Shown: one piece after another, positions 133-2,127 of the stretch
How positions within the stretch are numbered: the stretch's first letter is position 1
Layout of the letters: each line of letters opens with the position of its first letter
Sequence record: NC_005083.2
Length of the DNA: 64,000 nucleotides
Direction: 5' to 3' (one strand)
The notes under the pieces: model-generated
Database searches by the model: none
What the model was told of the DNA's origin: nothing
The model's input: the letters and a program-made list of their open reading frames with translations, nothing else
Translations under genes and position numbers: made by a program

Positions 133-256
133 TGGTGGAGAGTGATGGATTTGAACCACCGACCAAAAGATTTACCTAGTTATTAAGGTTTGCAGCATGA
201 ATGCTTGTCAGTATTCTTTAACATTCTTTTGCTCTACCAGACTGAGCTAACTCTCC
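133..256 (-). ncRNA. tRNA-like RNA 1: intact acceptor, D and T arms and CCA end, with a 54-nt loop replacing the anticodon loop
   Basis: Minus strand: GGAGAGT-TA-GCTC AGTCTGGTA GAGC-A-AAAGA[54 nt]TCTTT-TGGTC-GGTGG TTCAAAT CCATC-ACTCTCC-A-CCA. Confidence 0.85.
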
Positions 257-262
257 ATAATT

Positions 263-380
263 TGAGGGTGAAGTACAGGACTCGAACCTGCGACCTCCGG
301 CGTGCATGTAAATGCAGAATGAAATCTTATCAGACTTCGTTTTTTGAGCCGGCATTCTAACCAACTGAACTAACTTCACC
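263..380 (-). ncRNA. tRNA-like RNA 2: 46-nt loop replacing the anticodon loop, G-1:C73-type acceptor, no encoded CCA
   Basis: Minus strand: G-GTGAAGT-TA-GTTC AGTTGGTTA GAAT-G-CCGGC[46 nt]GCCGG-AGGTC-GCAGG TTCGAGT CCTGT-ACTTCAC-C-CTCA. Confidence 0.85.
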
Positions 381-874: not shown

Positions 875-1021
875 GAGAGTACATTGGTCGAGTGTAACGG
901 AATCGAACCGTTCCCACGATCTCCCTATGATATGCGTAAATTGGTTGCTGAATATAATCATGTCTGATTACAGTATGCTACGTGTGCTGCCACTACACCA
1001 ACACTCGACCAATATACTCTC
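875..1021 (-). ncRNA. tRNA-like RNA 4 (core 885-1007, ends A-CCA) with expanded anticodon region inside a 21-bp terminal stem; paralog of RNA 3
   Basis: CGAGTGT-TG-GTGT AGTGGCA GCAC...AACGG TTCGATT CCGTT-ACACTCG-A-CCA; inverted repeat 875-895/1001-1021 with one non-Watson-Crick position; insert clearly homologous to RNA 3. Confidence 0.82.
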
Positions 1022-1022
1022 G

Positions 1023-1174
1023 ATATTTTAAATGTGCGCTACTTGCACGCCGACTGAGCGAATTTTAACTCAGCTAGTTTTTGTTTGAGACATCGTCCGC
1101 TAAGACTATTCTCTGCATGCCAGAACTTATACTGGCTCTATGTATTCATTTCGGCTAACGCACATTTAAAATAT
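1023..1174 (-). ncRNA. Putative ~150-nt structured RNA with a 16-bp perfect terminal stem
   Basis: ATATTTTAAATGTGCG (1023-1038)/CGCACATTTAAAATAT (1159-1174); inner helices GCCGA/TCGGC, GCCAG/CTGGC, CTGAG/CTCAG. Confidence 0.6.
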
Positions 1175-1175
1175 T

Positions 1176-1280
1176 ACTCATCTTCAGAGAAGAGACAGAA
1201 ACGATGAGTCTAGTCTGTTTAATCAATGTTGTTCATCTTCAAGAAGAGGCGAGAACGATGAACTTAGCTCGCTTAATCAA
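1176..1280 (-). repeat. Two tandem ~55-nt repeats, each folding into an H-type pseudoknot
   Basis: Copies 1176-1226 and 1231-1280; stem 1 ACAGA/TCTGT vs GCGAG/CTCGC, stem 2 ACTCATC/GATGAGT vs GTTCATC/GATGAAC; all stem differences are compensatory. Confidence 0.8.
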
Positions 1281-1316: not shown

Positions 1317-1380
1317 CATCTTTTTCAAATATTTCATCGAGTTGAAAGTTTGTTTTCTGTCTCTCGACTCGATGAAATAC

Positions 1381-1424: not shown

Positions 1425-1679
1425 TTAAACGGAAATGATAATGCCGCTTTCAGTCTCACCTCGTTCAAGCGCAGCGTGCTTGATCTGAAGTTGTGATACT
1501 GCTTGCTGAAGTTCAATAATAGCTTTGTCATAAAGCTTGTTGTTCTCTTTAAGCAAAGCAATCTGATCGGTCTGCATACCAATGATGTACGTTAGTAGAA
1601 CAACGTTCTCATCAGTCGTCAGCGTTTCAGGCGCTTCATTGTACTTCTTCAGCACCGCTTCGGTAGATAGATCAGTCAT
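1425..1679 (-). CDS. Hypothetical coiled-coil protein (~84 aa)
   Basis: ORF track 1425..1688; the likely start is MTDLSTE at 1679, overlapping the 57B stop. Confidence 0.7.
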   Translation of the reverse strand: MTDLSTEAVLKKYNEAPETLTTDENVVLLTYIIGMQTDQIALLKENNKLYDKAIIELQQAVSQLQIKHAALERGETESGIIISV

Positions 1680-2127
1680 TATTAGCAACCCATTCTAGAT
1701 CTAATGGTTCGATATATTCATCGACAAGGCGAACCTCTGTATTGATGAACATAGGGGTAATTACGTCGTCATAAGACAATGTGACGTGCGGAGTATAGTC
1801 AGGGTAATCGTGAGTACCACCGATAGAGATAAGGTCTTCGTGACGTTCTACAAGAGCAGGACATGACATCTTAGCAACGACCGCGTGTTTACCGTCTTGC
1901 GTTTTCCAACAGTCAACTTGTTCAACAGTGGCAACGAAAGTGGTATCTACAACGGGCACATCAATTTGCTTACGACTATAAAGCACAGTCACGTGGAATT
2001 TATCGGGATCTAACGGATTTTTTAGACGAAGCGTTTTTTGCAAGCGAACTAGTTCTTGCTTACTTGCTTCGTCTAATTTGATACCAACGTAAGTTCCCTG
2101 ACTCTCAAGGAACTTAGATAGTTTCAT
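1672..2127 (-). CDS. 57B: gp57B, 2H phosphoesterase (Acb1 anti-CBASS nuclease family)
   Basis: Two HxT motifs (KFHVTVLYSR, TPHVTLSY); position next to 57A and the tRNA cluster as in T4. Confidence 0.9.
   Translation of the reverse strand: MKLSKFLESQGTYVGIKLDEASKQELVRLQKTLRLKNPLDPDKFHVTVLYSRKQIDVPVVDTTFVATVEQVDCWKTQDGKHAVVAKMSCPALVERHEDLISIGGTHDYPDYTPHVTLSYDDVITPMFINTEVRLVDEYIEPLDLEWVANND

Follow-up and report, generated by a model that had tools for sequence, protein, structure and literature searches.

Tandem H-type pseudoknots at the head of a tRNA-like RNA array in Vibrio phage KVP40 represent a new family of small covarying RNAs

We found that a promoter-driven RNA array of Vibrio phage KVP40 begins with two tandem H-type pseudoknots. 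Comparison between genomes indicates that both helices of each unit, S1 and S2, are real and maintained by compensatory change. The pseudoknot constitutes a new RNA family of ~50 nt, present neither in Rfam 15 nor in the literature searched, although its structural kind is known. The reading we favor, to which we give a probability of about 0.4, is that it may be an aptamer-like module, expressed early, that would bind a partner supplied by the cell and act in trans or at the 5′ end of its transcript.

The window (the whole stretch of DNA analyzed, 64,000 nt) is from KVP40 and matches AY283928.2 from position 180835 with 100% identity. Every relevant element lies on the minus strand, which is the strand of the tRNA genes. 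The pseudoknot locus is situated between a conserved block (gp1, gp57A-like, gp57B, KVP40.0321) and the KVP40 tRNA region, and comprises a promoter and two units, PK1 and PK2:

1316-1289, minus strand: sigma-70-like early promoter (TTGACT, 16-nt spacer, TG-TAAGAT; nine of 12 matches, TG present)
1280-1231, minus strand: pseudoknot unit 1 (PK1), H-type, with S1 of 5 bp and S2 of 7 bp
1280-1273, minus strand: PK1 5′ flank, TTGATTAA
1272-1268 and 1253-1249, minus strand: PK1 S1 (GCGAG) and S1′ (CTCGC)
1267-1264, minus strand: PK1 L1, CTAA
1263-1257 and 1237-1231, minus strand: PK1 S2 (GTTCATC) and S2′ (GATGAAC)
1256-1254, minus strand: PK1 L2, GTT
1248-1238, minus strand: PK1 L3, CTCTTCTTGAA
1230-1227, minus strand: A-rich linker between PK1 and PK2, AACA
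1226-1176, minus strand: pseudoknot unit 2 (PK2), H-type, with S1 of 5 bp and S2 of 7 bp
1226-1219, minus strand: PK2 5′ flank, TTGATTAA
1218-1214 and 1199-1195, minus strand: PK2 S1 (ACAGA) and S1′ (TCTGT)
1213-1210, minus strand: PK2 L1, CTAG
1209-1203 and 1182-1176, minus strand: PK2 S2 (ACTCATC) and S2′ (GATGAGT)
1202-1200, minus strand: PK2 L2, GTT
1194-1183, minus strand: PK2 L3, CTCTTCTCTGAA

The predicted transcription start is a few nucleotides ahead of the first TTGATTAA, and PK1 begins ~8 nt after the promoter. All the related phages have TTGACTT, and 12 out of 13 keep the TAAGAT -10 hexamer. A second promoter-like site (TTGACT-16-TAGAAT) lies further upstream, and between it and the pseudoknot promoter is a long, near-perfect hairpin of ~18 bp that may terminate the operon upstream; site and hairpin together occupy window 1330-1379 and 1381-1408.

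A preliminary description of this DNA had placed two pseudoknot repeats directly behind the promoter at 1289-1316. Both are there, on the minus strand, and both have exactly the layout it proposed (S1, CTA(A/G), S2, GTT, S1′, L3, S2′). Each unit runs in the order S1 5′, S2 5′, S1 3′, S2 3′; the two stems thus cross, which makes the fold an H-type pseudoknot and one that nested folding cannot show. Minimum-free-energy prediction of the unit region recovers S2 alone and does no better than with shuffles. The same description held that four of the five S1 pairs and two of the seven S2 pairs differ between PK1 and PK2, every change being compensated, while the loops are conserved. Our alignment agrees on each point, and extends the conserved loops to all 14 distinct units compared.

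How much weight the pairing can bear depends on what is compared. A generic descriptor of a pseudoknot with stems of 5 and 6-8 bp has ~180 matches per strand in the 64 kb, at the level of chance, so that pairing in one copy alone proves nothing and the proof must come from comparison between genomes. The loop pattern is far rarer, with two occurrences in the 64-kb window and none in 100 shuffles. Conservation of the pseudoknot region extends to 50 schizoT4 vibriophage records, from which 12 diverse relatives were taken and aligned with KVP40; together with one unrelated marine lineage, these 13 phages gave the 14 distinct units of the comparative set. The base of comparison for the family is only 14 distinct sequences from two lineages. 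Across them, 165 of 165 stem cells are paired, as against 25%-55% when the partner strands are slid, and seven of the 12 pairs show double-sided compensatory change (34 cells). None of 500 shuffles reached the observed covariation score.

The individual substitutions are of the expected kind. S1 switches from GCGAG/CUCGC to GCGAA/UUCGC and from ACAGA/UCUGU to GCAGA/UCUGC, and the marine lineage has a further compensated version, GCACA/UGUGC. S2 occurs as GUUCAUC, ACUCAUC, UCUUAUC, and GAUUAUC, every one with a matching partner strand. The three S2 pairs nearest the junction, AUC/GAU, are fixed throughout the 14 units. They are likely paired, although these invariant nucleotides could be part of some other core fold. 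Members of the F86/D482 clade have lost the outermost S1 pair of PK2, with A opposite C (L011/L012 1695-1746), through a 1-nt deletion at the border of S1′ and L3; in K566 a deletion of the same length leaves that pair in place.

Unpaired positions show the opposite behavior to the stems. L1 (CUAR), L2 (GUU), most of L3 (CUCUU..YUGAA), and a UAA triplet immediately 5′ of S1 are unchanged in all 14 units, which also have 8 unpaired nucleotides ahead of stem 1. Seventeen of ~21 such positions are invariant (three of four in L1, three of three in L2, eight of 11-12 in L3, and the UAA triplet), and the 27 invariant columns out of 52 in the alignment cluster in the loops and at the end of S2 next to the junction. 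The covariance model R1, derived from these units, scores PK1 at 67 bits and PK2 at 78 bits. In the window and the relatives searched, true units reach 66-78 bits with this model and nothing else exceeds 14 bits.

Two copies are present in 12 of the 13 schizoT4 phages. The exception is phage 1.081.O, with a single copy directly behind the same promoter that combines a PK2-type S1 with a PK1-type S2. In comparison with 1.081.O, PK1 kept S2 and PK2 kept S1, which suggests that after duplication every copy changed a different stem. Neighbors consequently share no stem, a pattern that would be expected from selection against cross-pairing. The KVP40 genome (244.8 kb) contains just these two copies, and its other tRNA transcription units are without the motif.

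In exact-loop scans, the motif turned up in no phage of another genus. Rfam 15 contained no family matching the units, either at gathering scores or at E ≤ 10 (searches of 1-1500 and 1150-1300, permissive filters included). Over these intervals tRNA alone was matched, with tmRNA and snoRNA at noise level. A BLAST comparison of the units with 72,556 plasmids and 5,426 E. coli genomes found nothing similar. Two exact-loop scans of IMG/VR produced no match that passed the pairing test except KVP40 and VH7D, and a protein-anchored search of the same resource for further schizoT4 contigs gave the same two phages. The exact-loop motif is absent from 185,579 species-representative genomes (GTDB) apart from one probably viral contig, and the scans of JGI/Tara metagenomes and GTDB added one lineage only.

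This second lineage is represented by PBMB01000011.1, two Tara Oceans contigs, and one ENA scaffold. PBMB01000011.1 is filed under a Chloroflexota MAG and is probably viral. Relatives of the marine element, retrieved by means of its proteins, included a further identical copy of the motif (L083); a distant 282-kb contig piece from that retrieval did not contain the motif. The marine pseudoknot is single and lies within an RNA array, ~150 nt downstream of a repeated promoter unit, TTGTAT-17-TATAAT; a normal tRNA-Asn(GUU) follows it after 9 nt. That promoter unit occurs in three tandem copies (L046 10500-10900, minus strand), each driving a small RNA, and the 5′ hairpins of the three RNAs are alike. 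Two of these RNAs end in terminators, and the third runs on into the pseudoknot and tRNA-Asn.

The marine stems are new and compensated, and the loops are identical to those of the schizoT4 units. In the DNA compared, the schizoT4 and marine lineages have no proteins in common. The marine element's proteins are nearly all orphans: ten ORFs had no PHROG match and one Pfam match (DUF4942), and the element also encodes SIR2, a metallophosphatase, and DUF4942. A second RNA module is nevertheless common to the two. A T-arm-like module of ~95 nt with a GGUUCGAAUCC hairpin is ~79% identical between the marine element, where it lies downstream of the pseudoknot (L046 9864-9958, minus strand), and the arrays of phi-ST2, ValKK3, and PVA8 (L005 2433-2525); it is absent from KVP40. 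On this comparison of sequences, it is RNA modules and not genomes that the two lineages have in common. Since the pseudoknot and a second module are found in lineages without common proteins in the DNA compared, selection acts on the RNA itself.

Downstream of PK2 the KVP40 array continues, after 1-2 nt, with a further structured RNA (unit B), then two tRNA-like units, and then Phe-like and Asn-like tRNA genes. The elements of the array that bear on the interpretation, and the gene on the upstream side, are:

1672-2127, minus strand: gp57B, which is Acb1, an anti-CBASS cyclic-nucleotide phosphodiesterase (Pfam PF23474, 158 bits, E = 1.7e-46)
1031-1174, minus strand: unit B, a multibranched RNA of ~145 nt (closing stem of 16-19 bp; -52.1 kcal/mol, z = -5.4)
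880-1016, minus strand: tRNA-like unit C ('trnX'), which has a T arm and is closed by a long stem
877-856, minus strand: terminator-like hairpin after unit C
379-267, minus strand: Phe-like tRNA-like gene (Rfam tRNA, 51.9 bits, full-length match)
256-136, minus strand: Asn-like tRNA-like gene (Rfam tRNA, 55.5 bits, full-length match)

Unit B shows compensatory changes in the closing stem and in two hairpins across nine phages, matches no Rfam family, and may be on the same primary transcript as the pseudoknots. The acb1 gene is ~400 nt upstream of the pseudoknots. Several relatives carry gp57B under the annotation "RNA ligase," and the 87-aa orphan KVP40.0321 (1425-1688) begins within it.

Our preference for an aptamer-like module follows from the combination of invariant loops and junction, covarying stems, modular copy number, lack of an expression platform, and conservation across lineages. 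Invariant loops round a helical junction, together with free covariation of the stems, would be the signature of a binding module rather than of a passive structure. Since the two lineages have no common protein in comparable DNA, the partner would most likely be supplied by the cell. The putative partner could be a conserved host protein (an RNase, a translation or tRNA-handling factor, or an immune effector) or, less likely, a small ligand. The units might be released from the array transcript, with cleavage in the A/U-rich UUGAUUAA linkers, or might act at its 5′ end, in either case titrating or recruiting the putative partner early in infection. Divergence of the stems after duplication would have avoided cross-pairing between the copies and doubled the number of binding sites. 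The pseudoknots are set behind a strong, early promoter, with the anti-CBASS gene acb1 as a neighbor. Downstream of the units there is no conserved expression platform, ORF, or terminator, and the sequence after S2′ differs among PK1, PK2, and the marine copy.

Linkage to tRNA or tRNA-like genes, seen in both lineages, could instead mean a role in cis. A leader acting only on its own transcript, in the processing, stabilization, or anti-termination of the untranslated array, is the main rival explanation, doubtful but to be taken seriously. It might be a folding insulator or processing guide for the tRNA and tRNA-like RNAs downstream, a stabilizer of the 5′ or 3′ end after cleavage by RNase P or RNase E, or a put-like element, by which RNA polymerase would be made resistant to Rho or to terminators along the untranslated array. 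The motif is always upstream of tRNA or tRNA-like genes and co-oriented with them, as close as 9 nt to tRNA-Asn in the marine lineage and 1-2 nt to unit B in KVP40; it is the first element after the promoter in the schizoT4 phages. The array is untranslated and rich in stable hairpins, and its T-arm element, too, is common to both lineages. Against a leader of this kind, the other tRNA transcription units of KVP40 do without the motif, the distance from the promoter differs (approximately +1 in schizoT4 phages and +150 in the marine lineage), and there is no conserved alternative pairing with downstream sequence. Moreover, a mere insulator or stabilizer would need no 17 invariant loop nucleotides.

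Invariant loops are equally expected of a riboswitch aptamer or a ribozyme core. The units, with their compact pseudoknot, covarying stems, and invariant junction nucleotides, might thus be ligand-sensing aptamers (a tandem riboswitch) or small self-cleaving ribozymes that control or process the array, although we think this very unlikely. The tandem arrangement resembles that of some riboswitches, and tRNA-linked ribozymes are known, whose position is like that of the units beside phage tRNAs. Pseudoknot riboswitch aptamers (preQ1, SAM-II/V, guanidine-III, fluoride, and NAD+-II) are similar in size, H-type topology, and conservation pattern; the KVP40 units differ from them in that they match no Rfam family, lack both an expression platform and a coding gene under regulation, and have a pyrimidine-rich L3. 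In particular, even permissive filters brought no match to an aptamer model in Rfam 15 at E ≤ 10; the units are accompanied neither by a conserved terminator or anti-terminator nor by a ribosome-binding platform; and there is no gene product under regulation. Ribozyme models (pistol, twister, HDV-like, hammerhead, and hatchet) likewise gave no match at E ≤ 10. A third helix inside L3 was considered and rejected, since its energy is negligible (-0.2 to -0.6 kcal/mol), and a hammerhead-like reading of YUGAAGA was discarded because the fold has two helices and not a three-way junction.

Serial pseudoknots next to a tRNA-like domain also recall tmRNA. The tmRNA pseudoknots PK2-PK4 are, like the KVP40 units, a series of H-type pseudoknots with short A/U linkers, and in the Rfam alignment the PK2-PK3 region of the model falls on the two units, UUAA linkers included. 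This alignment scores 9.1-12.5 bits, far below the gathering score of 47. ARAGORN reports no tmRNA, and BLAST of the units finds nothing in E. coli genomes, where ssrA is present. The array, unlike tmRNA, has no conserved tag reading frame and no alanine-type acceptor. In tmRNA the pseudoknot loops are not invariant and replacement is tolerated, whereas those of the units are invariant. That the units are derived from tmRNA, or are part of a phage tmRNA-like molecule, is hardly credible, and membership of that family is essentially refuted.

Two further likenesses are of layout or context. Upstream pseudoknot domains of some plant RNA viruses are tandem small pseudoknots directly 5′ of a tRNA-like structure; this is a likeness of layout only, in another kingdom, in an RNA genome, and in a 3′ UTR. 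T4 RNAs C and D and GOLLD/ROOL are structured noncoding RNAs co-transcribed with phage tRNA genes, as in KVP40, whereas the KVP40 motif, a pseudoknot of 50 nt, is much smaller and stands at the 5′ end of its array. The Rfam search of the array region gave no GOLLD or ROOL match.

The preliminary description had proposed that the repeats mimic type III antitoxins or form nuclease-blocking caps. Its tandem, covarying H-type pseudoknots at the head of a promoter-driven array have stood, but neither proposed function gained positive evidence. As decoy antitoxins, the units would bind and neutralize a host endoribonuclease toxin freed when the phage shuts off host transcription. The pseudo-ToxI of phage PhiTE reportedly provides a precedent for such a decoy.

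The resemblance is closest to TenpI, which has on average 2.2 copies of repeats with a mean length of 50.9 nt (39-57), within a range of 31-62 nt and ~1.9-5.6 copies for type III antitoxins overall (Blower et al. 2012, PMC3401426, Table 2). Tandem Repeats Finder gives the KVP40 pair a period of 54 nt and 2.1 copies (80% matches, score 135), inside the TenpI range (PMC3401426). In both cases approximately two short repeats lie in tandem directly behind a promoter, and in both an H-type pseudoknot can be formed per repeat; tenpI, too, can consist of two nonidentical repeats of this form (PMC12283969). The tenpIN loci are present in Vibrionales and abort phage infection, and acb1, next to the units, is an anti-defence gene.

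In other respects the units do not resemble an antitoxin. The preliminary description had suggested a search against the Rfam antitoxin models, and no antitoxin family was matched at E ≤ 10 (Rfam 15); tenpI was compared by its published description. BLAST found nothing in plasmids or in the E. coli genomes that carry tenpIN, and bacterial representative genomes contain no host counterpart with the exact loops (the one probably viral contig apart). In tenpI, a conserved stretch of adenosines is placed to contact stem 1 (PMC12283969), whereas L3 of the units lacks such a stretch and is pyrimidine-rich, with CUCUU..YUGAA in 14 of 14. TenpI repeats are followed by a short terminator and a toxin gene. 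The KVP40 units have neither a terminator nor a ToxN, CptN, or TenpN gene after them, which is, though, to be expected of a decoy. The absence of a cognate toxin gene, noted in the preliminary description, is confirmed: the 145-nt structured RNA and the tRNA-like units follow instead, and neighboring ORFs have no toxin match in PADLOC, Pfam, or PDB. The motif also occurs singly, in 1.081.O and in the marine lineage, in the latter embedded in a tRNA transcript. We regard an antitoxin decoy as quite unlikely, although the units could mimic an antitoxin in shape rather than in sequence, or one specific to Vibrio.

A broader form of this idea, a counter-defence RNA that would act through its invariant loops as decoy of an RNA-binding immune effector, with a TenpN-like type III toxin or a nuclease or other enzyme reading the tRNA-Asn anticodon as target, is unlikely in our estimate. 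L2 is always GUU, the Asn anticodon, and a tRNA-Asn or Asn-like gene is present in the array of both lineages; the coincidence may or may not be meaningful. The nuclease-blocking cap is a weak proposal, because the 8 unpaired nucleotides precede stem 1 and Vibrio is not known to have a suitable 5′-3′ exoribonuclease. No Rfam family of exoribonuclease-resistant RNAs (xrRNA) matched the units (E ≤ 10).

Several other readings were tried and rejected. Small ORFs over the units (1239-1382 minus, 1204-1428 plus) are broken in relatives by 1-nt indels and by deletion of a unit, and have no family matches. Complementarity of L3 to RNA targets within the window is at chance level. Mimicry of an RNase P minihelix by the stems (7 + 5 bp) fails on the lack of CCA and on a strand order that is reversed in comparison with the acceptor and T arms.

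Phage tRNA regions contain many unexplained structured RNAs. Among them this unit has unusually clean covariation and is small enough for direct structural work. If it does bind a host factor early in infection, as the aptamer-like reading proposes, an RNA aptamer would join the mostly protein-based tools of phage takeover and anti-defence, and would give a handle on the array of odd tRNA-like RNAs in schizoT4 phages. If counter-defence is its role, the unit would be an anti-defence aptamer of natural origin that marine viruses unrelated to one another exchange horizontally within an RNA cassette. Even as merely a cis-acting processing element, it would be a new and well-defined RNA family for Rfam.

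The tRNA-like members of the array are themselves unusual. The Phe-like and Asn-like genes, at the distal end of the array in the window, have inserts of 45-49 nt in the anticodon loop, and ARAGORN calls no tRNA at either. A group I intron was rejected, the inserts being far too short. In the Asn-like gene the insert comes after an intact AUGUUAA loop. The inserts of the tRNA-like elements (492-627, 880-1016, and 136-379, minus strand) have in common a small hairpin with CUGAUAAG or a close variant, and the units look like tRNA scaffolds that display this hairpin. Outside the window, in the tRNA region, a homolog of KVP40.0317 (L002 80-601, minus strand) is a 173-aa orphan with an unreliable match to the Colicin_D tRNase domain (16.4 bits, cut-off 25, E = 0.012). 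The closing stems of the tRNA-like units C and D are extended, to 14-16 bp, and ATTAAGCGAG, in the loop of the terminator-like hairpin that follows unit C, is a 10-mer identical to part of PK1 (flank and S1 5′ strand).
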